In this document: positions 14,561 through 39,004 of the stretch, one piece after another
Layout of the letters: every line of letters starts with the position of its first letter
Numbering within the stretch: position 1 is the first letter of the stretch
Source of the DNA: Lytechinus pictus
Lineage: Eukaryota
Assembly: GCF_037042905.1 (NCBI RefSeq)
Contig: NC_087261.1
Location: forward strand, 24,986,001-25,050,000
Direction of reading: 5' to 3'
Length of the DNA: 64,000 nt
Made by a program: the position numbers and the translations under genes
Notes under the pieces: generated by a model
Told to the model about the DNA's origin: nothing
Database searches by the model: none
Seen by the model: only the letters and a program-made list of their open reading frames with translations

Positions 14561-14662
14561 AATTATATATTTATGTTCTTTTATAAGAAGAAAGCTAAGA
14601 AGTGATTGATATGTATATTTATATATATAAATAATTTATTGGTTGGATTGCTTAACTAAGCT

Positions 14663-14702
14663 AGTCGTACAGACTGTTTCACCCTAAGGCTCATCAGCGA
14701 CT
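14663..14702 (-). ncRNA. Minimal type I hammerhead ribozyme (inverted copy)
   Basis: Exact reverse complement of 16189-16228. Confidence 0.88.
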
Positions 14703-15259: not shown

Positions 15260-16009
15260 CACGAAAAAGCCCTGAACGAAGCAGGCCACAATGCTACCCT
15301 CACCTACAACCCCAAGAACAACACGGATACAAGGCCAAGCCAACAGAAAAGGAAAAGGACGATAACCTGGTTCAACCCGCCATATAGCCAAAATGTCAAC
15401 ACAAACATCGGGAAAAGATTTCTGGCCCTGGTGGACCAACACTTCCCCAAGGAACATGAACTCCATAAAATCTGCAACAGAAACACCCTAAAGATAAGCT
15501 ACAGCTGCATGGATAACATGGGCAAATCCATAAAGGCACACAACAACAAAGTATCGACAACAGAAAAAAGCCGAGAAACCGAAAAGTGCAACTGCCGGAA
15601 AACAGAAGACTGCCCTCTACCAGGAGAATGCACAACAAAAAACGTGATCTACGAAGCCAAAGTTACCACCCCCCACGACGAAAAATCCTACATCGGACTG
15701 ACCGCCACCACATTCAAAACCAGACATGCATCTCACAAAGCGTCATTCAAAGATAAAGAGAAGAGGCACAGCACCGAGCTCAGTAAGCATATCTGGAAAC
15801 TGAAAGATGAGGGCACACCCCACAAGATAACCTGGAGAATCGTACGCCATGCACAACCCTACTCTCCACTCACAAAACGCTGCAACCTCTGCCTATGGGA
15901 GAAATACTTCATCATCACAGCAAACAGAAACAACAATTTGAACTCTCGAACTGAACTCATATCTACCTGTAGACATAAGAAAAAGTTCCTCCTTGCTGGA
16001 TATGGATAG
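15260..16009 (+). CDS. Penelope-like element C-terminal fragment: linker and GIY-YIG endonuclease
   Basis: Open frame extends upstream of ORF 15431: WFNPPYSQNVNTNIGKRFL..HFP..CNCRKTEDCPLPGEC..NVIY..SYIGLT..FKTRHASH..CNLCLWEK..LNSR. Confidence 0.9.
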   Translation, partial: HEKALNEAGHNATLTYNPKNNTDTRPSQQKRKRTITWFNPPYSQNVNTNIGKRFLALVDQHFPKEHELHKICNRNTLKISYSCMDNMGKSIKAHNNKVSTTEKSRETEKCNCRKTEDCPLPGECTTKNVIYEAKVTTPHDEKSYIGLTATTFKTRHASHKASFKDKEKRHSTELSKHIWKLKDEGTPHKITWRIVRHAQPYSPLTKRCNLCLWEKYFIITANRNNNLNSRTELISTCRHKKKFLLAGYG

Positions 16010-16188
16010 CCCCACCAGCCCCCCCCCCCTCACATGTAGTAATGACCCCTAAGTACCCCTGATGTAATAAACAATACACATGTACCCCTTCAGTAACCCC
16101 TTTCATCTCTGTCAACCCAATGTTATACCCTAATGCACATGCTCTGTATACTTTATTCTGTCCCAAAATTGTGTTCTTCATACTAATC

Positions 16189-16228
16189 AGTCGCTGATGA
16201 GCCTTAGGGTGAAACAGTCTGTACGACT
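16189..16228 (+). ncRNA. Minimal type I hammerhead ribozyme
   Basis: agtcg-CTGATGA-gcc(ttag)ggt-GAAA-cagtctg-TA-cgact: intact core, stems I and II, palindromic stem III, predicted cleavage after GUA at 16223. Confidence 0.88.
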
Positions 16229-16313
16229 AGCTTAGTTAAGCAATCCAACCAATAAATTATTTATACTCAGCTCCTACACAGTCGAGCACTATTAGATATT
16301 GCAGTATATCACT

Positions 16314-16474
16314 NNNNNNNNNNNNNNNNNNNNNNNNNNNNNNNNNNNNNNNNNNNNNNNNNNNNNNNNNNNNNNNNNNNNNNNNNNNNNNNNNNNNNNN
16401 NNNNNNNNNNNNNNNNNNNNNNNNNNNNNNNNNNNNNNNNNNNNNNNNNNNNNNNNNNNNNNNNNNNNNNNNNN
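16314..16474. other. Assembly gap
   Basis: Run of N. Confidence 1.
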
Positions 16475-19389: not shown

Positions 19390-19624
19390 TTACTAACTTC
19401 CGCAAACATATTGACATAGCAATGATTTGTCTACATCTACGACTTATTTCCTTATACTTCCACATAAGAAACAGTCACTTTGCTTTGCTTTTGAGCATGC
19501 GCAGTTTTTCGAAAAATGACATTCCTTCTCAGACAATATAACTATTGCATGTTTGAAACGCATTATCATCATTATCACTCACTACGTTTCAGTACCCAGA
19601 TCGCTTAGGCTCTATTTCTGGAAT
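19390..19624 (+). promoter_or_regulatory. Putative proximal promoter / 5' UTR of SRCR gene B
   Basis: Immediately upstream of ATG 19625; ETS-like ACTTCCG (~19397) and NRF1-like GAGCATGCGCA (~19493). Motif matches only. Confidence 0.35.
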
Positions 19625-19709
19625 ATGGGGAGATTACATACAATGTTATGCATTTGTCTCCTGCTCTTCGTGTCAAGAGTGGCGGCCAACACCTTTCCAT
19701 CGCAGTATA
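19625..19709 (+). CDS. SRCR gene B exon 1: signal peptide MGRLHTMLCICLLLFVSRVAA-NTFPSQY
   Basis: AATATGG start context, hydrophobic core with a VAA cleavage motif, donor A|gtaagt (phase 1), in frame with the exon at 25082. Confidence 0.85.
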
Positions 19710-21050
19710 GTAAGTACATAAGATACGAGATTCCTCTTCATCTTTTAGGATAAAGAACGACAATGTTTTAAAATTCAAAGATGTTCTAAAATAGCTGGAA
19801 CGGAAATATCGGACAAACTTTAATAATGAAGTTCATTTCTTTGATGAGCTAGTGTAATGTTATATAAATCGTCATATCCGCATCATACTTTCATTGACAT
19901 TAATAGCATGGGGGTTTTGTATGTTTAAACTATTGATGCACAAACCAGTTTGTTCTTTATTAATCAATCTCACAACTTTCCCCATTTTACTCTCTTCTTA
20001 TCCATTTGTTTTCACTTCCCTCTTTTTTTATTTTCTTTTATTTTACCTCTTCTCCTTTCCTGATCTTTCTTTACTTATAATATTTCTCCGCCTTCCTTCC
20101 CATTTTCCTCTCCTTGTTCTTTAGTTCACTATATTTATTCATATTCCTCTTAGGTCATGTACCGACTTATCTTATCAGCACAGTCAACTTAATATATACA
20201 AATGTATTAATTTCAATAAGATTGGGTTATATCTGTAGTGAGATTAACCCAACAATCGTGGTTATAAGCATATGCATACATACTGAAGGTATGCTATATG
20301 TTTTTAAATATGCATTTGATTATATAGATTATAAAAAAAACAAATTTTTTTATTACCTGGTAAAAATTATGATTATTATACTTTCGATTTTATTCATGTA
20401 TTTAGATCGGGTGCCTTTTATTTTGCATATTTATTTATGGCACGGCCTCAATGCAAATCAGACATTGCATTTGTTTTTTGTTTTTTACCGTGTGAAAATA
20501 AGATTTATCTATCAATCTTATGCATGAATTTTTTTTTATTTATGAAATCAAGGTCGGAGGTGGCGTGTGGCACATTCACACTTTTCAAACACCCAAAGCA
20601 AGCCCCAGCTTCATCCATTAAAAATGTCGTCTTTTAATATTTATGTAAGCTACCCGCGGTTTAATCTGATACATGCAATATTTTAAAGGTAATTTATATG
20701 TAGAAGCACTCTTTTCCAATATGATTAATGGCCCTTTAAATCTTATTCATACTTGAGGGAGTCGGTGTAGTATTGTGTTAATAACCCACAGTTTTGTGAA
20801 AATGAGTTACATGTATTTACACCATCCTGAATCACTGCTCCATAGAAAAATTTCATCTTGATATTCAATCAATGAGTCGGTCTATTGATGCAGGCATGTT
20901 TTCCCCCGCCCCCAAAAATACATCTTTAAGCAGGAATATAATGCTAAACCACACTTTTCAAGACAGCTGTTTGTTCAGACATATGTTTTTGCCTTCATGA
21001 ATCTTAACCTTAGCATTTATCATGTATTAAAAAAAGGTTTGTTAGACCAA

Positions 21051-21208
21051 GGGCCGGTTTCATAAAGGACTTGCAACTGTTGTAACTTTTGCCATAATGG
21101 CAACTAGTGTGGTAACATGGCTCAGCAGCCAATCATAATCAATGTTCCCATGGTAGTTGCCATAATGGCAAAGTTACAACATTTGTAATTCTCAAATGTA
21201 ACGGGCCC
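21051..21208. mobile_element. Degenerate Harbinger-like MITE
   Basis: gggccggtttcat ... atgtaacgggccc ends; internal inverted ttgtaactttgccataatggcaac motifs. Confidence 0.55.
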
Positions 21209-21339
21209 CAAATAATGACTTTGTTGACCTTTTTATGACGAGTAGCTGAATGTTTGGATATATGTTTTCATTATCTTCATGAATCTTTATCTTAGCATTT
21301 ATCATGTGTGAAAATTTTTCTATGCTGATGATGAAACAT

Positions 21340-21607
21340 GATGAAATGATGATGAAAATCCATATTTTATTGTTCGAAATAAACATGAAATGAAATACTC
21401 CGAAAATTGGCTTTGCCCAATTGATCGTGTGCCCGGCAGCCGCTGTGCAGCGCCAAATCGACGAGGCTCTATCTCTTTAATCGTTGAACGCCAAACAGGG
21501 TAGCAGAACTCCCATCTTTTTTTAAGTATTTTGGTCTGACGCTGCCGGGGTTTGAACCCCCGACCTCCTGGTTGAGAGACGGACGCTCTACCAACTGAGC
21601 CAACACA
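21340..21607 (-). mobile_element. tRNA-derived SINE
   Basis: Minus strand TGGCTCAGTTGGTAGAGCG (A box) ... GGTTCAAACCCC (B box), unrelated body, then AATAAA and a (TCA)n-like tail. Confidence 0.8.
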
Positions 21608-21708
21608 ACAACATGTTGGACATGACTTTGCTTTTTAAAAGTTACATAATCATGCTTGCTTTTAAGATATTTCTTCAAAAAGGAAGTTACCTAAATATTT
21701 ATAGGAAG

Positions 21709-22022
21709 TTAAAGGGGGAGTGAACTGTGGGTGGTCTCTCATTGAATGCATGTTATCAATAAATATTCTTAAGATATGCATTTTCAGATAACTACTAATA
21801 CTACAGAGAATAAATTGACCTATAATTGTATTTGTATAGAGACACTAAAATGTTTTGAGTAACATAATAATTGCGGTATAAATGTATTGAGTAGTTAATT
21901 CACATGTTATCATTCAGGTGAGTCTATATTACTAGACTACACTAGCATTATGGGTCAGGAAACTGATCAGGTATGTGTAGTTGAGGACTCGGAATGGCAC
22001 TATTGGTTCGTATCTGCTTTAA
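21709..22022. repeat. Interspersed repeat ending in ATCTGCT-TTAA; second copy at ~28967-29273
   Basis: Collinear similarity between 21780-22022 and 29027-29273. Confidence 0.7.
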
Positions 22023-22719
22023 ATGATGATACATATTAAAATGTTCTGTGTAATTTCGTCATCAAAATGACTTATTGCCACAAGTGTATTGTTACGAAAT
22101 TATTTTTCATGATTAATTAGGAGTTAAATGACTGATGAAGCTTGATACTATTAAAAGCATATATTTTTTTCATATGATATTTGTCATCGTAATGGCTTAT
22201 AGTGACAAGTGTATTGTTTCTAAATGTTTCTTTAATTATCCATGTGTGGTTTGAAAACGTGTGTATGGGTGAAATATAGGTCAGCTAGCATTGATTGGGT
22301 ATAATTCAGCACATCGTATTGCAGATTTATAAGGGTTCAGACTTCCTTTTGGAATCGGTCTTTGACTTGTATGGATTTTTTTTTAATTCAAAGTTAGTCA
22401 TTGCCTCGTCTTACACTGTTGCATTTAAAAACAAATCAGGAGGGATGGTATTCTTTGAGATCTGTACAGCATCCACATTATGGGGGAACGTCATGATAAA
22501 AAATGATTGGAATAGTGGTGGTTTTGAATTGTTGATACCGTAAACCGGGAAACAAATCTAAATTTATAATATGAAATGCCGACCACAAAATCATTACCTT
22601 TGGTTTGATACCCTTTTACGTGATTTTCCAGATTTAGAAACTATCAAAGCTAAACTCGTATCACATGCATGATGCTGATGAATGGGTCATTAACTTGCTT
22701 TCATGTAGTCCTCAGGCCA

Positions 22720-24260
22720 GCTCGGTGTAAAAATGGCAGAGGAAAAAATGGCAGAGGTAATAATGGCAGAGGTAAACATGGCAGAGGTATGAATTGCAGA
22801 GGTAATAATGGCAGAGGTAAAATGGTAGGGTTTATAATGGGAGAGGTAAAAATGACAGCTCTCGGTAAAATATGGCCAGTCTTAAACCCCCATGCAATGA
22901 ATTGTCAAAAAGCCCCCGCATGTACATAGATTAAATTAGAAGTGCATGTCACGGTTAGGCATTTCATCATATCATTATGTCTTCATCGGCCTAACAATGC
23001 TATTTCCGAATTCGTTGGAGGTGTACCGTGAAGGCTTTTTATAAAGAAATCAAACGACAGATATTTTTTCATTCAATTTATCAGGAGCAAAATGAAACTG
23101 CACTATTCTCATTCATCATTTTATAACATTCCTTTTTGTCTGGCTGGTTTTTTATATCTAAAGTTTTGCTAGGTTTACCAATGCAAAAAGGAGGAAGAGT
23201 AGACATAAGAGGTGGAAAGACATAGATGGTTAGGGGGAGGGGAAAACATGATAACATAGCGGGAAAAGCTTAGACGTTGAAATTGTCATGAATGATTGTG
23301 GTTAAATATTATGTCCTTATTTTTAATGTCGTCTGTAATATTCTTTTTAAATATTTGAATGACAATAAGCATGCGTTCCCAGGCTTGGCACTGAATATGT
23401 AACTGATTGTGAAAATCAATAATAATCTTGTTTTGACTGGTAAACCAATTTGGGATCGATCGAGGGGGACCGTCTGGTTCAGATTCTTTGCATAAACGAA
23501 GACCCTGAACCTTTACCACTGCATCCAATATGATTTAAACGCCTTGATGGTCATAACCCTTCGAAGCGGAGGTGCTGTTGGGTATTTTTTACACCATAAG
23601 CAGCACCCTCTTGGTAATTAGCTTGGTATGCTAAAATGTAGAGATTTGATACAAATCTCTGTTATTTTTCAAACATAAGAAAAAACATTGTTTATTATAT
23701 AATTATTATTTTTGTTGTAATTCTTTTTTCTGACCTAAAAGAACTTCATTTAGTCGAAATAATTTTTATGTCATTTTCCCCCTCAACCAAATCCCCTTTC
23801 ATTTTGGAGTGAAAACTTTTTTTGCTCGGCTTTTTAACAAACCAGCACCCCATATCTCTTTCATTTTTGCCTCTGCCATCTTTACCTTTGCCATTTTCAA
23901 CTCCACCATTTTTTTACACTGTTAGAAAATTTATACTTAAAAATACAAAATTATTTGTTTTTTTCTGTAAAACCTGTTTTTTAATTTTTCTTCTGTAGAA
24001 TCTACTGTTTTTTTCTAATAGTGTACCTCAGCTACTTTTACCCCTGCCAGTATCACATCTTCCATTTTTACCTCTTGTCATTTATGCCTCTGCTCTTTTT
24101 ACCTCTGCCGTTTTTACCTCGGCCATTTTTACCTCTGCCATTATTACCTCTGCCATTATTACCTCTGCCATTTTTTACTTCTGCTATTTTTACCTCTGCC
24201 ATTTTTACCTCTGCCATTATTATCTCTGCCATTATTACCTCTGCCATTTTTACCTGGCAC
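22720..24260. mobile_element. Foldback transposon with 15-bp tandem subrepeats and a 9-10-bp TSD
   Basis: Left arm (GGTAAAAATGGCAGA)n at 22728-22878, right arm the inverse (TCTGCCATTTTTACC)n to 24258; flanking direct repeat cctcaggcca at 22710-22719 and 24261-24270. Confidence 0.85.
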
Positions 24261-25081
24261 CCTCAGGCCAACCCCATCAACAAATTATTTGACTTTTTTG
24301 TTTTACAGCGATTGCTTTTTTTTCTTTTTAAGACTTTAATCGTTGAATATAATTTCTTTTTTTCAAAATGTCTTTAGGCATACATCATTTATCCTGTGCA
24401 TATGCGTGCTTGTTTTTTATGCACAGTGATCGACAAAAGAAATTGTTGTATAGAGTTGCAATTTTAGGTCCCAAAGAGGCTAAATTCAAATCTAACATTA
24501 ATTCTTCATTTTAAGTGAAAAGGCATTGACAATTTTGTGGTGGATTTACTGTGACGGATTTGGCTGCAATAAAGTAATAATCCAGAAATTCAAAATGTAA
24601 TTAAAAAAAATCCTCTTTTAAATCCACCCAAATGTTGGCTAATATATTTCTTCAACAGACTATTTAATCGCCAGTAGTTAGAGGTTCCTGTAACAAAAAT
24701 TGCAATTCTTGAATCTTTAACCTGATTTATTGATTTTTTTTTCAAACTTTCAAAAGCGATTATCTCAAAATGAATATTGCGTGGGTTAGCACTATATTGC
24801 ATCGAACCCCTCAAATGTACCTTTTGAAATATAAAAACCCATTATATTAACAGAAATAGTAAGTTTTCATAATTGGGTCAGATTTGATAAACACGCAGCT
24901 TCCTAACCCTTAACCTGATAACCGAAATCCTCTTGTCCGATATGTTTGTTTTCAATTTTATTTTATCACATAATGAAAATGAAATTGACATGCTACTTCT
25001 TTTCTACCATCAACCCTATAGCTTATAACCCTCCTAATAAACACGAATTATTGGTTTTTAAATAATTTTCCCTGCTTGCAG

Positions 25082-25435
25082 AACCTCTCGAAATTCGCTT
25101 CAAAGGTAACCGCGAAAGCAAGGGTCCAGTTGAGATCTTCAATGACGATGACATATGGGTGCCATTGTGCGACGACTACCTGACAGACGCGGATATCAAA
25201 GTTGTGTGTCGGACCCTCGGCTACGCGGGCGGTGTTCGCCAAGCTTCCGATGCCAGTGTTGCCGAAGCCAGTGGAAGCGGCGCCATCGACCTTGACTTTC
25301 CTGATGATAGACGAGTGCCTTCTTTAAAATGCACTGGAAATGAGACGAACCTGGCTTTCTGCCCCTACAAGAATATCGGCATTCACGAGTACTGCGATAT
25401 ATATGAAAGTGTCACAGTCAACTGTAAAGGAAAAG
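25082..25435 (+). CDS. SRCR gene B exon 2: SRCR domain 1 (divergent)
   Basis: ttgcag| ... G|gtagga, 354 nt. Translates EIRFKGNRESKGPVEIF..WVPLCDD..VVCRTLGY..LKCTGNETNLAFC..EYC..VTVNC. Confidence 0.92.
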
Positions 25436-26231
25436 GTAGGATATTTTTTTAATTATTGGTCAGGTAATGATGCTAGTTTATTCAGAACCTGTTTATCTTG
25501 CTTAGTTTCAAATGCAAGGTACTGTGTCATAGGTGTTACAGCATTCCAATAACCGTTCCCGTAAAGATGTCTGTTCGGTGTAAGTTTTCTTTCTTTCTAT
25601 TTCTTTGATCGAATGATTCTTATTATCTGCATTTTAATGAAAACAATGGGCGAGGGGCACTAGCAGCAGGTAGTATCTCATGTGTGAGGGAGGATCTCAC
25701 TGGCAGACACTGTCTATACAATCTGTTAGGTTGTCCCTATCAATATGTTGCCTACTGGAATCAAGATGACCCCTTTATTAAAACATAATATAACTCAGTT
25801 TTGAAGGGTTTATGTACGATATTAACGGTTGGTATATATGAACAGTCATGACATGTTCATCATATATTGTATATGTCATTTATACATTTGTTTCAAATTA
25901 TCTAAAATATGCACGGCATAATGTAAATTAACATATATGATCTAAATCAATGCCTCCTTTCGCCAGAATCCGACTAAACGGATGCAATGTGTTGTTCCAT
26001 TTGCTCCTTTCCTGCAGTCCTCATTGTCATGATTGTTTTGCCTATGTTCACTGTAAGGATTAATAGTCAAAGGTTGCTTCCACGGTTGCTGCGGGAAGAA
26101 AGCTTATCTGACTTTTGACAAGGTTTCTTGTCTGATCCGACTTTATTTCCTATCCAATATCTACTCAAATCTACCATGAACCTACTATGGATGATCTCGT
26201 GAGATCTTATCTTGGATCTTCTTCTTCTTAG

Positions 26232-26540
26232 CAAACGTTCGCTTGCAGGACGGCAACTCCACAGAGGGAAGGGTCGAGCTGTTCCACAAGGGTTCTTGGG
26301 GTACCGTCTGTGTGCATAACTTCGGGATGTCCGAAGCCAACGTCGTTTGCCGAATGCTTGGGTTCGGGTTCGCTGAACGCTACTACGGAGCAGAGAAATT
26401 CGGTGCGGGTACCGGAGACATTGTGATTGGTGGTCTAGATTGCTCGGGAGATGAAGTGAACATTGATCGGTGTTCATCGTCTGCATATGGAGTCGAAAAC
26501 TGCACTCACCAGGATGATGTTGGAGTCAGCTGTGTAGCAC
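26232..26540 (+). CDS. SRCR gene B exon 3: SRCR domain 2
   Basis: ttcttag| ... C|gtaagt, 309 nt; canonical 6-Cys SRCR (VRLQDGNSTEGRVELFHKGSWGTVC...DVGVSC). Confidence 0.95.
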
Positions 26541-27084
26541 GTAAGTATTTCTAAAGTTATAAACACCACAAAAAGCACACTGTAGATATAATATGGGTTA
26601 GGGTTATTACTAGGCTATTACTTTGTAACATGAAATTCTATTTCGATTTCGAATCTGAAATACGAGTAATTAATGCAACTCCACAGACCAAGACCGTTGT
26701 GAAACCAATTCAGAGACAATTGAATTATGCTGTTTAGTCTCCGAAAGACATAAACAACTCGATGTGGCCTTGACAGAACATAGAAAATGTTAAAAGTGAA
26801 TCAGAACTTCAGGAGCGTGCCTTGTCAGGGGCCCCATTACATGATACAAACATGGTAAAGAAGGTCCATTTTCCACTTTGATGGATTTAGCATTCAGCAC
26901 GGACCGTGGCCCAAAGTGTTATGTGGGTTTGACACTCTTAGACCTTGAAGCGCCTTTTGTTTCTACGTCGTACGTATACCGCGGTGGTAGACTGGTAATA
27001 TATACACTTTATACTGATATATATATATATATATATACATGTATATATATATAAATATACATAATATTGAAACAAATGAGAAAT

Positions 27085-27783
27085 CCGGGGGGGGGGGGGC
27101 AGTAAAATTTATTGCTGTACACATGCGTGGCAAAGAAAACAAAAACTCGTTTAAAGGTTTTGGACGCGGACTGCGCGTGCACTCGTTAAGAGTATCGAAA
27201 ACATCGATTTTTTAAAAGTGGTTTTGAAGGAGTGGTCAATGGTCAACCGCGGGGTCAAACTTATTTAGGGTATTTTTTTCATTTTTTTTTAAAGACTAGC
27301 CAAACGTGTTTAGGGTATGTTTTTCCCCAAGCTTTTTCCCCCGGGGCTTTTTTATCCTCGTTTCTGAAAAGTGTTCGGGTTCTTCCCGATTGTAAGCAAC
27401 GACCCTGGGTACGGGCCTGGGAAAAGGAAAAACGATTATTGTTCAGGGGCCGCGGAAGGGGGGGAGCTTGAACCCCTCCCCCACTCTTTTCCAAAACCAT
27501 GTACAAAAACGTAAAAATAACCATATGATTGTGATTTTTTGCATGGTCAGCCCCCCCCCCCCCCCACTTTGAAAACCGTTCTGCGGCCCCTGTTGTTAGC
27601 AAGAAGACGATACTTGTTTAGGGGTCATATTTTGGCGACAACTTTTTTAGGGCCCAAAATGTGTAAAAGAAGCCCGCGAAAAACTTGTTAAGGGGGTTAT
27701 TTTACACAGAGAAAAACTCGTTTAGGGGGTGTTTGGAAATAATTTGGTCACGCATGTGTACAGCAATACATTTGACCCCCCGG
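27085..27783. mobile_element. Non-autonomous TIR element with an 8-bp TSD, containing a nested CAGGGG-TIR mini-element (27444-27592)
   Basis: ccggggg..tattgctgtacacatgcgtg / cacgcatgtgtacagcaata..cccccgg; TSD tgagaaat on both sides; inner caggggccgcggaa / ttctgcggcccctg. Confidence 0.85.
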
Positions 27784-28109
27784 TGAGAAATGAATGCATG
27801 TATTCAGGCTTGTATTAGCTCGGATCCAACTACTGCACGCGGCTAATCATTGTTCATAAACTCATCTGCACCAAGGACAAGATAATCATAAAAAGGTTGG
27901 TAATTTGCCTGCCGGTCAGTTGAACTCTGCGTCGCCTAACTCCTGGCACGCCTCCGAGGTCTAGTGCTTAAGGCATTGGCGTTCAGGGCCAACACTCTCT
28001 TTCGGATGTATATGTTCCTTTGGAATACTCGTTATTGCTTCAAAAATACGTGAACGCAATGTTCACTCTTTTTAGCCAATGATCACGATCATTCTTGTCA
28101 TCATTTCAG

Positions 28110-28424
28110 TTCCTGTTCGCCTTGAAGACGGGTCTTCACCCAATGAGGGTCGCGTTGAGGTGTACTACAACGGTGCATGGGGTACTGTTTGCGACGATGA
28201 ATGGGATACGGAAAACGCCCAAGTCGTCTGCCGAATGATCGGCTATCAGGGGGTCATCAGGTCGTACAGTAGGGCGTTTTTCGGTGAAGGGCAGGGCGAT
28301 ATCGTCCTCGACAACTCCCAGTGCAGCGGAGATGAAAGGCACATCGCTCTCTGCGGAAATCCGAAATATTTGAGTCATAACTGTGGACATCATGAAGACG
28401 CCGGTGTAGTCTGCTCTGGACCAG
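28110..28424 (+). CDS. SRCR gene B exon 4: SRCR domain 3
   Basis: tttcag| ... G|gtacct, 315 nt; VRLEDGSSPNEGRVEVYYNGAWGTVCDDEWD...CGHHEDAGVVC. Confidence 0.95.
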
Positions 28425-29339
28425 GTACCTAAATATTTTGATTTCATCATTTTTCGATATATAAAAATATAATTCTAATTATGTTCGACACCATATTGAG
28501 TATTGATTTCCAAAGATGAGAAGACATCTAGCGATTAAAAGTTATTGAATGAACAGATGAATAAATTAAACATATAACGGTAAAGAAGTTTACAAGAGCA
28601 AACGATGTACACAATAAAACACAAACAGCATGAACAGTTAGTAGATTCTCGGAGAATCATTAAGTAAGTGAATAATAAAATGAAATAGTTAACGCAAAGC
28701 AAAACTGTTTCTGTTTATGGTAACTCCCGTAGGAACTCGGCAGGACAGCTTTGCTGATAAACGACAAGCTATACTAACGTTTACACCTATATTAATTGTA
28801 ATAATGTATTATTCCCGCTTCGGCACAATTTTTTTTAATATTAATTCATATAATTGTATTCATTGAAATTATTTTATTGGCATTGTGAATACTGATTACT
28901 TACACATCCGCATTTTTGTCAGAATTCTCCATGTTTGATTGTTCAATTACACCTTCAAAATGATCTTTTAAAGTGTGTGCTCTCTCATTGACTGTGTGTT
29001 ATAAATATGTAGTCTCAAAATATACGTTTTCAGATATGCACTGATACTACAGAAAATAAATTGACACATAATTGCATTTGTGTAGAGAGAAATTAAAATG
29101 TTCTGAGAGGAAAAGTAATTGTTTTGCTACTTGGTAACATAATTATTGCGGTGTAAATTATCGTTCAAGTGGGTCTATATTACTAGACCACACTAGCATT
29201 ATGGGTCAGAAAACTGGCCAGGTATGAGTAGTTGAGGACTCAATGTGGCGCTATTGGTTCGTATCTGCTTTAATACCATGCTTTGTAAAATCGCCTATGG
29301 TATTGAAAAGGTGGGATAGGGAAGGGTGACTGACACCAG

Positions 29340-29455
29340 GGGCCCGTTGCAGAAAGAGTTGCGTTTAAACGCAAGTCAAAAAATCAATCGCAAGTCCCAA
29401 ATGCGCGCTGTTTTTTAAAGTTGCGATTGATTGCAACTTTTTTTGCAACGGGCCC
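29340..29455. mobile_element. Harbinger-like MITE, CAG TSD
   Basis: cag|gggcccgttgca ... tgcaacgggccc|cag. Confidence 0.85.
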
Positions 29456-29509
29456 CAGTTCAGGGAGAGTTTAGTTTATGACACATACATTGTAACGTTA
29501 AAACCACAG

Positions 29510-29836
29510 CTACAGCGAATATACGACTTGTTGATGGGCCTGATCCTAGCCAGGGTCGTCTCGAACTGTACCTGTTGGGGGCCTGGGGCACTGCCTGCCG
29601 GAAAGACTGGACACACATCGACTCTTCCGTGGCGTGTCGCAAGCTTGGCTACTTCGGTGCTGCGGATACCTTATCGCCACCAACTACCTATGGGAATGGG
29701 ACGGGAATGGTGTTGCTACGGGAACCCCGCTGCAAGGGCAAGGAAGCAGATCTCTTGCAGTGTAATGTTTCTTACCCCATAGGCGTCACCGACTGCACGC
29801 ATGATGATGATGTTTGGATTAGCTGTCTGCAAAAAG
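29510..29836 (+). CDS. SRCR gene B exon 5: SRCR domain 4
   Basis: Acceptor cacag| (an alternative in-frame tacag| gives start 29516), donor G|gtaaaa; IRLVDGPDPSQGRLEL..WGTAC..VACRKLGY..CTHDDDVWISC. Confidence 0.9.
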
Positions 29837-30246
29837 GTAAAACATGCATTTGATCTGTTAACATCCTTAGTCATTTGGCGCAGGGAAATTGAGCAAAGGA
29901 CCCAAGTTGTCAAAGTACATGCAGCTAGATGTAAAGCCAAAAACTGAAACAAAGTATAAAGATATTTTGGGGCCTGCCTTTTGGGGGTTTTAGTCGCATT
30001 TCGGTGTCTTTCGTCGCAGTATCTGTCTGCAAAAAGGTAATACATGTATTTGATCTTTAATGTTGTTTTTGTTCCTTCGGCGCCTAGAAGTTGATGGAAG
30101 GACTCAAGATGTCAAATTAGCAATATAGATTTGTTTAAAGACACATGTGGTAGTTCCTTCTGAATTTTTGTTGGGGGTGTTATTCCGATGTCTTTCGCCT
30201 CAGTGACAGACGTTCGTGTTTAAGCACTGTCCTTCCAATGCCACAG

Positions 30247-30573
30247 AAAACCTTGAAGTACGTCTTGTCGGCGGACCTGCTCCTGATGAAGGACGTGTCG
30301 AGGTGCAACACCGGGGCCATTGGGGGACCGTTTGTGATGACAACTGGGATATCCTGGACTCGCACGTCGTGTGCAGGATGCTCGGCTTCAGTGCCGCAAG
30401 GGACTACTCTTGCTGCGGACGTTACGGTAGGGGTTCAGAGTACATGTACATTCTCTTGGATGAAGTGCAGTGCAGCGGAACAGAAGAGAACCTTGGACAC
30501 TGCATGCGGCAGGACTACGGGGCCCACGACTGCGACCATTCGGAGGATGTTGGGGTTTCCTGTATAAGTTATG
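30247..30573 (+). CDS. SRCR gene B exon 6: SRCR domain 5
   Basis: ccacag| ... G|gttagt, 327 nt; VRLVGGPAPDEGRVEV..WGTVCDDNWD..YSCCG..CDHSEDVGVSC. Confidence 0.95.
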
Positions 30574-30971
30574 GTTAGTTTTGGTTACCCTGGCGGCATA
30601 GAAAGTATTATGATAACTCATGTAACTAGTGGTATAAGAAGTAGTGCAGTACCAAGCAGTATATAGTAGTAGTAGTAGTAGTATGGGTAGTAGTAATAGT
30701 AGTATCAGTCCGCAGCAGTATTTTCTGAAGTTGTTATTATTTATGTAGTTGCTCTGATTATTATCATTATTATCATTATTGGGTTTTTTTTTATTATCAT
30801 CATTATTATTTTTGTAATCGTTATCGTTATAATTGTTTTAAGTATAATTATACCATCATTATTATCATCATGTGCAGCAGTCAAAAAAAGTAGTGATGGA
30901 GTAGAGTTGTTATAGAAGTATTAAAACGTTATTTTTTCTACATTATATCCTTCTTTTTTTTCTTTTTTTAG

Positions 30972-31064
30972 AATCGACCACCTCCTTACAAGATGTCCAA
31001 AGTACGCCTACATCTGAACCTCGCGTGAGCGAACACTCGACGGCCCTATCGTCAACGTTGATAG
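30972..31064 (+). CDS. SRCR gene B exon 7: Ser/Thr-rich stalk (ESTTSLQDVQSTPTSEPRVSEHSTALSSTLI)
   Basis: Long polypyrimidine tract + ag|, donor G|gtaata, 93 nt, phase 1-1, open frame. Confidence 0.85.
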
Positions 31065-31272
31065 GTAATATACCTTAATTACTAATATTTCGAAGTCTTC
31101 TCGCAATTATGTTTGGCATGGATAAATAACATCGTGAATAAAGCACACGACAATTGCAAATGGTGATACCCATTTTCCCCCATATTGTTAGCTAGGGGTG
31201 GATTATGGATCTCAGAAGAAGTTAGGGGAACACATTTTGTTATTATTGACAGGCAAGCTCACGACCTCTACA

Positions 31273-31516
31273 CACTGCAAAAACTCCGGTGTTGATTTAA
31301 AACCAGCCCGGAATCTATATATATGTCCATAACAGAGAAGTATTAAAACAACGCCAGTTTGGAATCAAACCAATGCTGTTTTAATACTAATTGGTGTTGT
31401 ATAAACACCTTTCTGGTGTTAGACCAAAACGAAACTGATGTTGTTTGACACTTCTCTGGTGTGGACATATATAGATTCCGGGCTGGTGTTTAATCAACAC
31501 CGGAGTTTTTGCAGTG
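31273..31516. mobile_element. CACTG-ended MITE (EnSpm/CACTA-like), 2-bp TSD CA
   Basis: ~55-bp TIRs cactgcaaaaactccggtgttg... / ...caacaccggagtttttgcagtg. Confidence 0.85.
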
Positions 31517-31880
31517 CATGGATCAACCCCCCTCCCCTCCCCCCCAAAAAACAGAATTGAAGATCACGTAGAAAAAAATACTTCTATTCATTAAACATGT
31601 AAAAGGGGGCAAGTAATGGCCACACGCTCCCTTTTCTACCATTCTTGGATTCGCACCTGCATTTAGTCCAGGAAGATCCATGCAATTCTGCTTTCAAATT
31701 CCAATCTATTAGTGGGATCCGGATCATCATTGCCAGTGTTATTATAATGATAATCATTATAACCGGTATTATAATTCACCATTATCGGTGGTATGGTTAT
31801 TTGGGCGGGTCATTATCATTAACTTTACTACAACTTGTGCTATCACATCGCGATATCGCGTCAGGTCTTGTAATTGCGTA

Positions 31881-32139
31881 CACTGCAAAAAACACGAGTG
31901 TTAATTTAATACAGCCCAGAATCTATATAAGTCCACAGTTTTAAAATGTTAAAGTGTTATAAGTGTTAAACTACACCAATTTGGTTTTGGTCTAACACCA
32001 AATAGGTGTTTATACAATACCAAATAGTGTTAAAACAGCATCGGTTTGATTCTAAACTGGTGTTGTTTCAATACTTTTTTGGTGTGGACATATATAGATT
32101 CCGGGCTGGTGTTATATCAACGCCTGAGTTTTTGCTGTG
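31881..32139. mobile_element. Second copy of the same CACTG MITE, opposite orientation, TSD TA
   Basis: ta|cactgcaaaaa ... tttttgctgtg|ta; interior is inverted relative to the 31273 copy. Confidence 0.8.
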
Positions 32140-32813
32140 TAACACGCCCATTGAAGAAAAGGTCCTCCGAAAGACCCCAAAACGTCGGGCTCTGTTTATC
32201 CTACCCTTTGTATATTGGGCCTATAGTTTTCACGAAGCATCTGGTAAATTGGACAAGACCTTTCAGGATTTTCTGGGGCCACTTTCTCGAATGGTCGGGT
32301 TACACATTCACCTGACCTTACGCAATAACCCGATAATCATGATAGTGATGGCTCAAGCTCATTATTACTAGTATTACATGTATTTCTATAATCATTATCA
32401 TTACTTGGTATATCATGGACCCAGTAAATAATACCAAAACCGAACATTAGTTGGGAATCGTAATCATGTTGATAATGTGGTGATGTTGTTCCCAACAACA
32501 AAATAATGATATGTGGGCATTCTTTTATCAATTCGTGATGACTTTCTCAAGCTAGTAGTTTTCTTCTTACCCCCTCCCCCCCCCCCTTCCACCATTATAT
32601 TCTGTAGGTCACTTTATTTGGGTTACCGTTGCACATTTTGAATATCACCATCGTAATTTGAGATTTGTTCTCAGATTTGGAACTCTTTATTTCGTCGAAA
32701 AAAAAATTCATTGTAAATCAATTAGGATCCTATTTCAGAGAATATTAAGGAAATTCTTCTTCCTGCACATTCAATCATTTTTAAATAAGCATTCCTATTT
32801 TTATTTCATCTAG

Positions 32814-32895
32814 GTACTGTTGTATTATTTTTATTGCTTTTCCTGATTGCCCTCGCTGGTTTGGTCTATGAAAGGTCCAGAGAATTACATTACAA
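32814..32895 (+). CDS. SRCR gene B exon 8: transmembrane helix (GTVVLFLLLFLIALAGLVY-ERSRELHY)
   Basis: tttcatctag| ... AA|gtaaga, phase 1-2; hydrophobic run of ~19 residues. Confidence 0.85.
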
Positions 32896-33331
32896 GTAAG
32901 ATTCATTTTTAACTTCCTTATTATGCCATCGTACTAATTTATCAACCATACCATTGATTCGTTGTATTTCCAGAATCTAGAAAAACGTGATCATTGTAAA
33001 GGCATTAGGGACAATACTTCGTTCGTATCTCGCTTGAGTATTTACGATAAAATTGTAGACTGAACGCAACATTTGTTCTTTCTAAAAAAATCCTCATGTT
33101 ATCAAACTAATTCACGAATGATTCAATATATTCTTTTTAAAGTGGACGCGCCTCTATATGAGAATTTATGTTCAAGTCTCTTGCATCTTTCGATACCAAG
33201 TTTATGAAAATCGAACAGGGTGTCACAAGGTCACTGCACCCTTTGTTACCACATTTATGATAAATATTACCAAGACGCAAATTTTCATCGGTTGAGACTG
33301 CCAACTTCACACCCTAAGTTATAAGAATAAT

Positions 33332-33801
33332 GGGCACATGAGAGTAATTCATCTGCGCGCAAAGCATGTCGGACAGGCGTAAGTAAAGATCACATGACTT
33401 TATTGATTAAAATAATTCATTAAAAATAGATCAAATGTTTGTATATCAAAAGAAGAACGATAGAGATAATGCTATGTTCATACTCTTTCATAATTAAGGC
33501 GTTTGGGGAGGCTAGACTGTATTTTTGTCTTTCATTTTAAGTATTATTACCCATAATGCAGTTCTGTTTTTTCTGGCAATGAACTGGCCGAAATTATGGT
33601 TAGTCTTATTTCAGGCCATTTAACTTTTGATTGAGCTGGGCAAGTACCTGATTAACATATCAAGTCTTAATGTACTGTTAATTGTGACTAATGTCAGTGA
33701 ATTAAAGCAAAATCTATCGAGGGATTGATTTTTGATGATTTTTTGATGAGCTATGATATAACACGTGAATGAATGGGGGTCTGTAATACTCATGTGTGCC
33801 C
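33332..33801. mobile_element. GGGCACATGAG-TIR MITE
   Basis: Inverted ends; nearly identical to 34806-35275. Confidence 0.85.
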
Positions 33802-34152
33802 TATAGCGCGACTACACTTCTACACTGTCGTTGCTATGGCTGGGCGTCGTCTGCTAGAAATCAGTGGTGAGAATGCTTCAAACAGTTTTATACAAAGTGA
33901 TAGGTTATGTTTAACAGCAGTTGATAAGTATATAACTCGGCATTTGGTGCATTTATCGCTTACGATGCTGAAATGACGCTTTCAAATGTATATTCAATGC
34001 CTATTATCATTTATCATGCAGAAATGCGAGTTTCTACTGCCAATAGGAGATCAGATCTGGTTGGTTTGAGAGTGTGAAATTAAATAAGTAGGGATTTCAA
34101 AATGATACATAACTTCTAATTATCATCAAGGATTCCTATTTTCAATATTTAG

Positions 34153-34206
34153 AGCACGCCGAGAAAGAAAGATGAACAAAACATTAAAATACATAAACTT
34201 GTCTCA
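34153..34206 (+). CDS. Candidate juxtamembrane cassette exon of gene B (KARRERKMNKTLKYINLSQ)
   Basis: tttag| acceptor, 54 nt, phase 2-2, open and basic-rich; the donor CA|gtcaga is weak. Confidence 0.4.
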
Positions 34207-34805
34207 GTCAGATGTTATACATCATAGATTGCGCACTTGAATACTATTCACTTCGTTGAAAGCTACGCGGGGGGGGGGGGCGAGCTGAGTCGGGGTACAT
34301 ACCCCATCCTCCTAGCTTGTACGCAGGGCGGGGTTGATGGTATATGTCTATAGCACCCCCCCCCCCCAACTTGTGAGTTATAATGAGGAAGAGAGGCGAT
34401 ATGAGCACAATAATTGCTTACACTATTTGTTTGTTATCAATTTTCTTTTATTTACTTTGTTTATTTGTATGCGAATAAAAAAGGTAATAAATCACTTCGA
34501 ACAAAATTAAACATGCTAACAAGAAGTTGTAACTCCACACAATATATATTTTAGCCCATTGATTGACATCAAACAAGTAGAACTTGTAGCTGCAATACCA
34601 TAGCCTATAGGAAGCGCACAAAATATATGAATGGAACACTGTATTTTTACATTAAAATCAGGGGCGTCTAATGAGACGTTTTCTTTTCTTTTAACACGTT
34701 TAGTCAGATTAGGTATTGACTGCAAGGTATCAATCTCTTCAGGAGAACCCACTCTTTCTTTTGAGAGCATTATTTTCAACTTTTTGTCATTTGACCCTCA
34801 GTATA

Positions 34806-35275
34806 GGGCACATGAGAGTAATTCATCTGCGCGCAAAGCATGTCGGACAGGCGTAAGTAAAGATCACATGACTTTATTGATTAAAATAATTCATTAAAAA
34901 TAGATCAAATGTTTGTATATCAAAAGAAGAACGATAGAGATAATGCTATGTTCATACTTTTTCATAATTAAGGCGTTTGGGGAGGCTAGACTGCATTTTT
35001 GTCTTTCATTTTAATTATTATTACCCACAATGCAGTTCTGTTTTTTCTGGCAATGAACTGGCCGAAATTATGGTTAGTCTTATTTCAGGCCATTTAACTT
35101 TTGATTGAGCTGGGCAAGTACCTGATTAACATATCAAGTCTTAATGTACTGTTAATTGTGACTAATGTCAGTGAATTAAAGCAAAATCTATCGAGGGATT
35201 GATTTTTGATGATTTTTTGATGAGCTATGATATAACACGTGAGTGAATGGGGGTCTGTAATACTCATGTGTGCCC
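34806..35275. mobile_element. GGGCACATGAG-TIR MITE
   Basis: ta|gggcacatgag ... ctcatgtgtgccc|ta. Confidence 0.85.
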
Positions 35276-36909
35276 TAATATGTATTATGTTCACAACCTC
35301 GTTTTACTGCCCATCTATCGGGGAAGGAAAGAGGGCGCTCTTAGACTTTGGTAACCAGCCAAAATTCCCATGTTGTCAAACAAATATTTAGGTCTTTTTT
35401 TTATTCGATTTTTTTTGGCTCAAATTGCCCGGATCCCCCGTTAGGATATAATAATTGATTACCTGAATTTCTCTCACATGTGGCATTGGGAAGAGCTCCA
35501 TCTCGACGTAATCGTTCAAACATGTCTAAGGCTTGGTCAGACGTGTTTGCTCTAGTTTCTATATGAACTGAAGTTATCGAGCAAAATTCATGCAAATGTG
35601 CGGGTATGTAAACATGAACATTAAGGTGCACATCATTTGCATGACCTTTTATGCCGGACTACAGACCAAATTCGAAACTATACTGTATAGAGCAAGGACG
35701 AAGTTCGACTGAAAGTCTGGATAGAGTCGAGATAGAAGCAGTAATAGAACTGTTTTTGATACCCGATGGAACTGAAATTTAGCTGATCAATTATTGAATA
35801 TTGAAGAGTACATTTGAAGAGGCACTTAACTGAGAAACCAAGGGGAGAGTAGGTATATTTCTAGACTTGCTAGGTGAGGTTCGATACAAGAATAACCTAA
35901 GCTAAGTGTCAAAGTTTGCACGATGAGAAGTCAATCAAGCAGCTTATGATATAGGAAATAAAAAAACACTTAAGAGAGACGGCTAGCAGATCAGGCCTCG
36001 TACTTGTCGCTCGTGATATTTTATTGGCGCCATTATGACTTGCACAAGAAAAGAGAGGACACTTGAAATATACTGATGCACCAGAAGTTACTTTGTAACA
36101 TTATCACATGAAAAAGGGTGATAGTTTAGTCATAGCAATCATGAGACCTGGTAAAAAGTCTAGGATTTAGGGCTATCACAAATCAAGAACCCAAAGTAAA
36201 TGACGATCCAAATTTCGGTCGAGTTTGTTCTGTCCGAATTTTTATCCCATAAGTCCGTTGGGATAGCCCGACCATGCTACGGACAGATTATATGCAAATC
36301 AATAAAGACTTTTGCGTATTGAGTGGGATTCAATTTCCTGGCTTAAGATTCGGGAATTTCTAGTTTGCTAGTGCTTGCTAAAAATGGGGGGGGGGTGGTA
36401 TTTAGTACGGCTATATGAGATATCTTGCTACTTCTCTAAAATACATGTAGCATCAATATTATTTGCAAAACTCACTTAAATGCTCATTTTGAAGATATTA
36501 CCTGAACAAATTATATATATATTTCAAGTGGAACATCAGACGATATGATTATATCAGATACTTACAATTTCCTGTCATTATGTGGTATATTCAAACAAAC
36601 AGAGTCACACTTCTCTGTCATTCAAGAGGAAATAAACACTTCAACTTAGGTATTGAATGTGTTATTTTGCCTTATTATTCTATGTCGTTTTGCGGTAGAA
36701 AGCAATACCTAAAAAAGAATAAAGTTAACTATAATAATCCCGTAAAGAAACACACCGAAATTCGCACGCGCTTGTCAATGAATCTAGAACAAAAACAAAT
36801 CCATAATTTGATCTGTCGAAATGGTCAATCGCCAAACAAGGGAAATGCCTTTGAAAATAAGGAAAACCCCCTTTAAAAACATTGCATGTTCTGTATAAAC
36901 ATAACCTTA

Positions 36910-36997
36910 ATCCAAGTCCTTTGGAAGCGCATAGAGACATTATTCATAATCGTGATATGCGCTATACAAGAACTGTTTATTATTATTATTATTATTA
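36910..36997 (+). mobile_element. SINE/LINE 3' end (stem-loop plus (ATT)n tail)
   Basis: agcgcata ... tatgcgct inverted pair followed by (tta)n. Confidence 0.55.
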
Positions 36998-37656
36998 ACC
37001 TTATATTATTATTTGTTTAAAAATGATAACAGTGTTGTATATGATATCCAACACTGTTATCATTTTTAAACAATTAATAAGGATATCATTTACAATGCAT
37101 CAAGATCCAAACTTTTTGGTTGTCATTGCGCAGAAAGTGAACAACTGGATTTTCATTGCATTTATTTTCATTTATTTTTTTCACATTCACCCATGACGGT
37201 TAGTTCATACCAGAAATGTAAATTTCATGACTTTGATATTCTTATATAATATTTTCATCGTAATTTAATCGAAGATTTAATTGATGATTTATAAATCGAT
37301 TTCGGGGACGAAACGCAATTTCTCCAAAAATTATTAATCCATGTGCCTGCCATGGCGGGTGCTATAGTAATTCTAAACAATATTTATAATCATAATTATA
37401 CCTACTGTTTACAAATTACTCACCATTTTTACAGGTTTTTTTTAAATAGATTTCTGGGGGCAACTGGTGAGTGTGGGGAGTATTGGCAGTAATTCTTTCC
37501 CCCGTTCTGTCTATCTGAGCAATGCTGAGAGGGAAGTGATCTTTTCCATGATACTTCATTTTAGAGATTCCACATGTTGCAAGTAGTCTCTGCCATGTTA
37601 GTTGATGAATTTTTATGGCACAATTCTTTTACAAATTAGTGATTTTTTTTCTTCAG

Positions 37657-38047
37657 GAAAATGATGATAATGGCACAAAGGGATCTGAATCTCCAACCTG
37701 TATCGCGGAAGGGGGAGTCGTCAAACAATAGCTACGCCAAATCCTTCACCGGAAGTCACCGCGACCGGACGGAAACCAGTCCTGGTCCGAGCTGCAGCCA
37801 GGAAGCTTCGGCCTCCGCCAACGGACAAACCAATCATACCGTGTACGAGGTTGACAGCACCGACAAGGAGGTTGAAAAGCTCCTTTCTGTCACATCTAAG
37901 ACTGACCCATCTCCACCGGAGCTACCCAAGAGGGATCCGCCACCACGACCTGACTCACCAGCAACCTACGAGTGTCCTCTGGATGTTTACGAGCCTCCTT
38001 CGGACTATGAAGATGTCTTGACTGCTACGTGTAAAACTAATGTCTAG
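37657..38047 (+). CDS. SRCR gene B terminal exon: cytoplasmic tail
   Basis: tttttttcttcag| acceptor in phase 2, in frame with the TM exon; ORF 37661-38047 is Pro/Ser/Tyr-rich; AATAAA at 38389-38394. Confidence 0.85.
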
Positions 38048-39004
38048 ATATATATCCCAGAAGGAAATGTTGCATTGATCAGCATTAAACGAATACTTGT
38101 TTTGTGCATGTAACTCTGTCATGTGATGTCCATGCCTTAAAACGCTGTTTTAGATTTTAAGCAAGTTGTTTAAGTCACGCTCACAACAAGTTCTTTCATC
38201 TTTAAACGATTGTTTTTTTTAATTATTTAATCTTCCTTTAACAACTTGCTTAGAACTTTAAACAATAGTTGTTGGAGTGACAGGCTGACATGCAACGTGC
38301 CTGTATTTTTAAACAGCCTGTTTAGGCATACACATTGCATGACAGAGGTGCACACTGTACAACGCAATGTCTCCAGCATAGCGGACTGAATAAAACTTAA
38401 ATTTGCTGGGAAATAATGGAAATTCTTAATGCAAAATTTACGTGGTTCATATTCAGTATGTCAATACTGTCTTGCTTATAATATTATCGAAGAATCGTCA
38501 GTTTTGTATATTAAAGAAACATTTTTGTACACTTATGAATAATCCAGATAACAACATAACGTGACTAAGGAAAGGCAAGATATTTATAACCAGATGAAAT
38601 TGTACACTGTTTGATATCCATTTAATCAGTATTTACTTTTTATCATGTAATATTGTATTGGTCATACCGTTATCCAAAGTTATATTTACAGGCAATTAAG
38701 ATCATAAAGTATGTCACAAGGAAGGGAACGGATGCACCAGATCATTTATTTATTTGAAGCTTTGTAAAATTAATGATAGATTTTTAAATTTTCATTTTCA
38801 GCATTAAAAAAATCGATTTTTCTTATTTATTCTGATACTTAATTATTATATGAAAGGTTGGCGCATAGATGACCAAGAATTGTTTGAAAATTTCAATTTC
38901 AAATCAAGTTGGGTAGAAAAATAGGTCCTTAATTAGTAAGGATACGACGACCTGGTGTGAGCAAGAGATGCCTATTTAGCATTTATTTCGTATTCTTAGC
39001 TTAG

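Follow-up and report, generated by a model that had tools for sequence, protein, structure and literature searches.

The stretch of DNA analysed here (the window) comprises 64,000 nucleotides of the sea urchin Lytechinus pictus (positions 24,986,001 to 25,050,000 of the forward strand of NC_087261.1, assembly GCF_037042905.1), and all positions below are counted within it. On its + strand, between 19625 and 38047, lies a gene predicted to encode a membrane receptor with five tandem SRCR domains and a cytoplasmic tail. Translation in all frames revealed five SRCR-like open stretches, a hydrophobic N-terminal start, a 27-aa hydrophobic stretch and a terminal stretch rich in Pro, Ser and Tyr. As proposed in the first-pass annotation of this DNA, nine exons could be located that splice in frame to 2283 nt, encoding 760 aa with one terminal stop; all eight introns run from GT to AG, and the SRCR and stalk exons are all phase 1-1 (Table 1). 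The same annotation was right that the open reading frame (ORF) track misses or misreads four exons: it has no entry for exons 7 and 8 and begins exons 2 and 5 too late, at internal start codons. Of the 93-nt open candidates for exon 7, the chosen one, in phase 1, stands out by its strong polypyrimidine acceptor and its GTAATA donor, signals missing from the others.

The exon 8 to exon 9 join, singled out beforehand as the point that could overturn the model, is borne out by assembled contigs from the same species, which we guess to be RNA. The junction from 32895 to 37657 (GT..AG, 4761 nt skipped) was present in one contig in each of three runs (X1-X3). These spliced contigs of 1773, 1305 and 927 nt extend 1224, 951 and 404 nt upstream of exon 9, well beyond exon 8 with its 82 nt. 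At the joint, the shorter side measures 85 nt, made up of these 82 nt and a TAG common to the end of exon 7 and the end of intron 7, and thus fits a join of exon 7 to exon 8 within the same contigs. Contigs cover intron 8 at repeats only. Since a six-frame search with the tail found its exon once in the 812-Mb genome, the spliced contigs do not come from a genomic retrocopy. When the 760- and 762-aa proteins were looked up by exact match among assembled contigs, no match, and so no full-length transcript contig, was obtained. Downstream of the stop codon, contig cover of 38048-38420 has gaps, the longest at 38206-38244 in X1, and X1 and X2 may extend past 38420. Of the 31-mers sampled from exon 9 and the 3' untranslated region (37657-38420), 5-15% also occur in 15 runs, from four studies, of a second organism (coded B), matches that probably represent the expressed ortholog of a close relative.

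The nine-exon model is residue-for-residue identical to RefSeq XP_054773054.2 ("DMBT1-like", Lytechinus pictus, 760 aa), so that the gene is already annotated and is no new discovery: it is a correctly read, real gene, annotated yet unstudied. Its protein cluster has three members, the other two being XP_054773054.1 (762 aa, L. pictus) and XP_041484765.1 (766 aa, L. variegatus). Versions.1 and.2 differ at 19 positions, made up of 15 substitutions (six in the tail) and two 2-aa gaps, with one net indel of 2 aa in the mid-tail and no differences in the last 60 residues.

Table 1. Coordinates of the five-SRCR gene in the window (aa, residue numbers of the 760-aa protein)
Feature	Positions	Strand	Description
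Exon 1	19625..19709	+	Start codon; signal peptide, aa 1-28, core CICLLLFV; phase-1 end; from hydropathy, identical to RefSeq, kept in L. variegatus and S. purpuratus
Exon 2	25082..25435	+	SRCR domain 1, aa 29-146; 6 Cys; long acidic insertion; CDD pair kept; Pfam PF00530, E 1.8e-16
Exon 3	26232..26540	+	SRCR domain 2, aa 147-249; 6 Cys; without CDD cation-site pair; Pfam E 8.3e-27
Exon 4	28110..28424	+	SRCR domain 3, aa 250-354; 6 Cys; full CDD...N...E acidic site in all three species; Pfam E 1e-32
Exon 5	29510..29836	+	SRCR domain 4, aa 355-463; 6 Cys; without CDD pair; Pfam E 1.8e-23
Exon 6	30247..30573	+	SRCR domain 5, aa 464-572; 8 Cys including Lytechinus-only CC doublet 519-520; full CDD...E site; Pfam E 6.7e-30
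Exon 7	30972..31064	+	31-aa Ser/Thr-rich stalk; phase 1-1; in RefSeq model and both orthologs
Exon 8	32814..32895	+	Transmembrane helix, about aa 604-624; basic juxtamembrane ERSRELHYK; phase-2 end; 100% identical in L. variegatus
Exon 9	37657..38047	+	Cytoplasmic tail, aa 631-760, and stop; no Pfam family; predicted unstructured; single copy in own genome
Conserved C-terminal motif block	37931..38044	+	aa 723-760: PRPDSP, TYECPLD, EPPxDYEDV, ATCKTxV-COOH; 80% identity between L. pictus and S. purpuratus
3' untranslated region	38048..38420 at least	+	Contig pieces in runs X1-X3; AATAAA near 38390

An Rfam scan of 19000-40000 gave no RNA family. In intron 8, a piece of about 40 nt of a dispersed repeat (36910-36950) is covered by contigs to a depth of 2000-3000 and by raw RNA reads in their hundreds, which run on into unrelated sequence on either side; the repeat occurs in many transcripts, and this fragment of it does not belong to the message of the gene. 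The minus strand of the same intron carries two near-identical ORF-bearing repeat copies about 1.5 kb apart (33620-33793 and 35094-35294), which share the same translated 57 aa but for one residue, one copy having a 9-aa N-terminal extension, and RNA contigs show transcribed repeat sequence across 33250-35450. Minisatellite-like arrays lie in intron 1 at 22669-22929 (+) and 24068-24247 (-), where GRGKNGRG repeats form an inverted low-complexity pair.

Domain architecture and orthologs

Pfam SRCR (PF00530) was matched in each of exons 2-6 (E-values from 1.8e-16 to 1e-32; 60.7-112.8 bits for the five domains against a cut-off of 26.1), which places the protein in the SRCR superfamily, and the stalk, membrane and tail exons gave no match. 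SRCR structures in the PDB were matched down to an E-value of 1e-158, with CD163 as the best; taken singly, the domains match structures of CD6, neurotrypsin, Mac-2BP, DMBT1, SCARA5 and MARCO (E 1e-25 to 1e-38), and domain 3 (D3) matches SRCR domains of CD163, CD5L, CD6, neurotrypsin, Mac-2BP and DMBT1. The ectodomain has five N-x-S/T sites. Hydropathy in 19-residue windows peaks at residues 3-7, the signal peptide, and again at 594-607, with a maximum of 2.94 at 603-621; this second peak is followed by ERSRELHYKK, which puts the C-terminus in the cytoplasm. An AlphaFold model of residues 560-760 has a single confident helix, at 595-641, with mean values of the predicted local distance difference test (pLDDT) of 86-97 in 10-residue blocks over about 600-629. 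With its signal peptide, five Pfam SRCR domains, stalk, helix and tail of about 130 aa, the protein thus lives up to the earlier description of a complete five-SRCR transmembrane receptor, and its predicted topology is that of a type I single-pass membrane protein.

In group B, an SRCR domain has eight cysteines, the additional two lying ahead of GRVEV and within the LGCG motif (PMC10855680). Here, D1 to D4 have six cysteines each, and the two additional ones among the eight of D5 form the CC doublet 519-520, which is off the group B positions and absent in Strongylocentrotus purpuratus. These vicinal cysteines (window 30410-30415) occur in both Lytechinus species, the stretch being deleted or changed in S. 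purpuratus, and they may form an extra disulfide or provide free thiols specific to the genus. In the 2004 classification of Sarrias et al., group B is reportedly also marked by having each SRCR domain on a single exon, and exons 2-6 indeed hold exactly one domain each, in phase 1-1. In its cysteines the gene thus follows group A, in its exons group B.

An Asp-Asp...Glu cluster that forms cation site 2 (Ca2+/Mg2+) is required for ligand binding in DMBT1, MARCO, CD163 and CD6 (PMC7043408). The site was located by motif positions (CDD after WGTVC; HxED before the last Cys) and not by alignment to DMBT1. On this basis, D3 and D5 have the whole site in each of the three species in which conservation was compared (L. 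pictus, L. variegatus and S. purpuratus), D1 has part of it, and D2 and D4 have none. Given what the cluster does in the four proteins above, D3, D5 and partly D1 are likely to be binding modules.

In L. variegatus, the ortholog (locus L002) shares the nine-exon structure, and its protein is 88.9% identical. In S. purpuratus, the best match to the ectodomain is P0068, a protein of 594 aa with 62% identity. A full-length search returned thousands of SRCR proteins, among which only P0068 stood at the ortholog level outside Lytechinus; matches in Diadema, sea stars and vertebrates were rejected as orthologs, their 34-46% identity being that of paralog-level domain matches. At the S. purpuratus locus (L003:10001-36629, GCA_000002235.4), the P0068 model ("DMBT1") passes over the stalk-exon donor and runs on to a stop close by, and a separate gene model of 157 aa begins inside the membrane helix and holds the tail. 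Using the canonical donor and acceptors present at this locus, one intact nine-exon ORF of 747 aa is obtained; the split models look like an annotation artefact, and the 594-aa and 157-aa models should probably be merged.

The neighbourhood was compared as well. A neighbouring gene runs off the start of the window, with three or more of its SRCR exons on the minus strand at 56-1513, and the same head-to-head SRCR neighbour is found in L. variegatus (L002:1-3003) and in S. purpuratus (L003:596-5429). The presence of this opposite-strand upstream gene in all three species supports orthology. A tblastx comparison of the S. purpuratus downstream flank with the window gave no match, so that synteny is not shown on that side. 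In blastn searches, L. variegatus upstream sequence matched two window stretches each time (6465-7936 and 16547-17993; 8279-8891 and 18511-19102), paired matches that fit a duplication of the upstream region (window 6066-19613) specific to L. pictus. The gene itself is a stable single-copy ortholog across two echinoid families and not a recent tandem duplicate.

The cytoplasmic tail

The tail motifs that had first drawn attention to this gene are all present, in the order and with the spacing described: PPELPKR (717-723), PPPRP (725-729), YECP (735-738), YEPP (742-745), SDYEDV (746-751) and KTNV (757-760). SH3 ligands were defined as PxxPx[RK] or [RK]xxPxxP, the immunoreceptor tyrosine-based inhibitory motif (ITIM) as [S/I/V/L]-x-Y-x-x-[I/V/L] and class I PDZ ligands as a C-terminal [S/T]-x-hydrophobic. 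Among 20,000 composition-preserving shuffles of the tail, PxxPx[RK] appeared in 18%, at least two YxxP in 13%, an ITIM in 17% and a PDZ-type end in 2.5%; all four occurred jointly in 0.02%, a figure inflated by the post-hoc choice of motifs. Since the motifs were picked after seeing the sequence, their pattern of conservation is a stronger argument than these shuffles.

Conservation along the protein is indeed uneven. Between L. pictus and S. purpuratus, Nei-Gojobori estimates of nonsynonymous (dN) and synonymous (dS) substitution gave a dN/dS of 0.27 for the ectodomain (65% identity), whose most conserved module is SRCR domain 4 (77% identity, dN/dS 0.16). The mid-tail (671-722) is only 31% identical (dN 0.59, dN/dS 0.31), and identity rises to 80% over the last 38 residues (dN 0.12, dS 0.78, dN/dS 0.15), a constraint equal to that on SRCR4 and SRCR5. 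Judged from these rates, the C-terminal block of the tail is under purifying selection. Invariant or near-invariant segments in the three species are AQRDLxLQPxS, NSYAKSFTGSxRxRTET (with a basophilic RxRxxT site), PRPDSP (with a PxSP site), TYECPLD, EPPxDYEDV and the C-terminal ATCKTxV; Y735, Y748, PDSP and T-x-V are invariant in all of them. The C-terminus fits a predicted class I PDZ ligand throughout (KTNV, KTIV and KTNV in the three species).

No relative of the tail came to light. In a six-frame search of its own genome, the tail matched only itself. Exhaustive phmmer against 1.84 billion representative proteins returned only the L. pictus protein and two spurious matches (E 4e-4), with no vertebrate protein; a word-indexed search of the tail region within full-length proteins and a profile of the three tails run against proteins of 71-236 aa both gave nothing beyond the ortholog cluster, blanks that are weakened by the fact that the 157-aa S. 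purpuratus product, which holds the membrane helix and tail, is itself missing from the searched libraries. Likewise, no homology to the tails of CD5 or CD6 was found in these searches. The tail thus appears to be unique to this ortholog group, with no homolog detectable elsewhere.

Candidate roles of the receptor

We consider it quite possible, if short of probable, that the gene encodes a receptor of the expanded echinoid SRCR family that signals through clustering-driven tyrosine phosphorylation and is held by a PDZ scaffold. In such a receptor, the five tandem SRCR domains would stand on a short stalk of the O-glycosylation type, joined to the tail by one membrane-crossing helix, and the acidic clusters of D3, D5 and partly D1 would likely mediate cation-dependent binding of polyanionic, microbial or self surface ligands. 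The 130-aa tail, presumed to be unstructured, would act via short linear motifs concentrated in its last 38 residues: the Pro-directed Ser site PDSP, Tyr735 in YECP (YxxP), Tyr748 in DYEDV (an acidic YExV of the Src/Fes type that is also a YxxΦ) and the T-x-V end. Clustering driven by ligand would then lead to phosphorylation of Y735 and Y748 by Src-family kinases, the phosphorylated tyrosines would dock SH2 adaptors or kinases, and a PDZ scaffold bound to T-x-V would hold the receptor at a membrane site. Among SH2 domains, the Crk/Nck/Abl class prefers YxxP and the Src/Fes class YExV, and acidic residues flanking tyrosines are typical of tyrosine-kinase substrates. The L. pictus genome has at least 50 SH2-domain exon matches, and with them the machinery that such a receptor would need. 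A signalling role for the tail is considered plausible. What the analysis shows is the gene structure, the domains, the join between exons 8 and 9, the orthologs and the constraint on the motif block, and from there we infer the type of ligand, the phosphorylation, the partners and any immune role. A reading of the two tyrosines as an immunoreceptor tyrosine-based activation motif (ITAM) was rejected, because the first of them sits in a YxxP and a distance of 13 residues separates the two.

A number of observations weigh against this signalling reading. YEDV also fits the endocytic YxxΦ, so that conservation alone cannot separate signalling from sorting, and the conservation itself was read from three species of two echinoid families. 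Comparison with the orthologs kept only part of the motif set that the first-pass annotation had put forward: YECP, YEDV and T-x-V are conserved in all three species, and the SH3 motifs, YEPP and the Ser of the ITIM are not. PELPKR is found in both Lytechinus species and is absent in S. purpuratus, and RDPPPRP is interrupted by a 4-aa insertion in L. variegatus and absent in S. purpuratus, which keeps only PRPDSP; with neither PxxPxR nor RxxPxxP in the S. purpuratus ortholog, the proposal of SH3 ligands has to be dropped. The same is true of the suggestion that the receptor is possibly inhibitory, which relied on the ITIM: both Lytechinus species have SDYEDV and S. purpuratus has EDYEDV, with Glu in place of Ser at -2. 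Tyr742 of YEPP is a Trp in S. purpuratus, and Tyr694 is not conserved either. As for disorder, the AlphaFold tail has no secondary structure except a four-residue helical turn (703-706, with a block-mean pLDDT of about 50), but this model was built on a single sequence, for which low confidence is weak evidence of disorder. Lastly, a raw-read RNA run (X21, about 6% sampled) had zero reads on exons 8-9, a count that is uninformative on expression.

As the main and a serious rival reading, the same tail could instead serve an endocytic scavenger receptor, in which ligands are captured by the ectodomain, DYEDV is a YxxΦ sorting signal for AP-2, a mode of sorting shared with scavenger and clearance receptors of which CD163 is an example, and the PDZ-binding end fixes the protein within a single membrane domain of a polarised cell, with no phosphotyrosine signalling at all. 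YEDV not only fits YxxΦ but is invariant, near the C-terminus and in an acidic context, the Lytechinus tails contain an acidic di-leucine type motif (EVEKLL, 702-707), and the ectodomain is nearest to SRCR proteins of the clearance type, CD163 giving the best PDB matches. Nevertheless, we regard this alternative as somewhat unlikely: the equally conserved TYECPLD has Pro at +3, which misfits YxxΦ and needs another explanation, EVEKLL is not conserved in S. purpuratus, and the acidic flanks of both tyrosines are those commonly seen in tyrosine-kinase substrates. Chance would be another account, the motifs then being random matches in a low-complexity tail rich in Pro, Ser, Thr and acidic residues that merely anchors the protein, with all function in the ectodomain. 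Single motifs did arise in 13-18% of the shuffles, three of them (PxxPxR, YEPP and the Ser of the ITIM) are not conserved, and the tail has no homolog elsewhere. This account is nevertheless very improbable, considering that constraint on the last 38 residues (80% identity and dN/dS 0.15 at a dS of about 0.8) equals that on the best SRCR domains, next to a mid-tail at 31%, and that a T-x-V end found in only 2.5% of the shuffles is kept in three species.

It could also be argued that the main product is secreted, read-through of the stalk donor yielding a soluble five-SRCR agglutinin with the membrane form as a minor isoform. In S. purpuratus, the annotated P0068 owes its end to precisely this kind of read-through at the stalk exon, the corresponding read-through in L. 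pictus (window 31064-31075) is predicted to stop after 3 codons (...LIGNIP and stop) to give 607 aa, and most close echinoderm homologs are predicted to lack a transmembrane segment. Against this stand the exon 8-9 spliced form in three L. pictus runs, with an 85-nt side that fits the exon 7-8 join, the transmembrane and tail exons, which each of the three species has kept intact under purifying selection, and the artefactual look of the split S. purpuratus models, so that we give a mainly secreted product hardly any credence. Membrane and secreted read-through forms could coexist, the latter being possible in Lytechinus and Strongylocentrotus alike, but a secreted form cannot be the only product.

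Comparison with known SRCR systems

Class A scavenger receptors (SR-AI, MARCO, SCARA5) are type II proteins with a collagenous stalk and a single C-terminal SRCR domain, from which the urchin protein is set apart by its N-terminal signal peptide, five SRCR domains, C-terminal helix and absence of collagen repeats. With DMBT1/SALSA/gp340 it shares the use of one exon per SRCR domain and, in some domains, the Asp-Asp...Glu cation site; DMBT1, however, is secreted and has CUB and ZP domains, whereas the urchin protein consists of SRCR domains only, followed by a transmembrane helix and a tail. Orthology to DMBT1 was rejected because no exon gave a CUB or ZP match and a transmembrane helix is present; the RefSeq name "DMBT1-like" is a best-hit label and not a statement of orthology. 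CD163, WC1 and SCART resemble it in their numerous SRCR domains in tandem, one transmembrane helix and a short tail bearing Tyr/Ser motifs, and CD163 provides the strongest PDB matches, but these proteins are group B, have 5-11 domains in fixed cassettes, are restricted to vertebrates and showed no tail similarity in the phmmer search.

Closer to home, the S. purpuratus genome has 359 SRCR genes, 70% of them in tandem clusters (PMC10855680), a survey that holds no discussion of tyrosine or ITIM motifs in SRCR tails. The gene described here fits this echinoid expansion by its SRCR-only ectodomain, its one exon per domain and its adjacent SRCR gene on the opposite strand; it differs from its closest relatives, mostly predicted to be secreted, by its helix and its conserved, unique tail. 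For the several hundred sea-urchin SRCR genes, which are thought to act in innate immunity, we know of no signalling route into the cell. This gene would be a tractable case, being single-copy with clear orthologs and a short tail with few conserved residues, in a species used for genetics.

The "CD5/CD6-style" label given to the tail at first holds as an analogy of layout, closest to CD6, and fails as a claim of kinship, since the domains are of the 6-Cys type and the tail has no homolog. Like CD5 and CD6, the urchin protein is predicted to have a type I topology, with SRCR domains in tandem on a stalk and a long, presumably unstructured tail that carries tyrosine motifs; unlike it, CD5 and CD6 have three group B (8-Cys) domains, whereas its five domains lack the additional cysteine pair of that group. 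The two phosphotyrosines nearest the C-terminus of CD6 bind GADS, SLP-76, GRB2 and TSAD, and its C-terminal sequence is a ligand for the syntenin-1 PDZ domains (PMC6305463). The urchin protein similarly has two conserved tyrosines just before its conserved T-x-V end. Convergence with vertebrate SRCR co-receptors, as initially suggested, therefore remains a reasonable view, given a tail without homolog in 1.84 billion proteins and SRCR domains that are not 8-Cys group B. The bolder version, in which echinoids independently built a CD6-like co-receptor from an SRCR ectodomain, a bipartite phosphotyrosine dock (Y735 in YECP and Y748 in YEDV) and a PDZ scaffold, seems to us unlikely. If the tyrosines are not docks, the protein would be one more membrane-bound scavenger receptor; if they are indeed phosphorylated docks, it would be a convergent counterpart of the CD6 type and a defined entry from SRCR recognition to signalling in an invertebrate.

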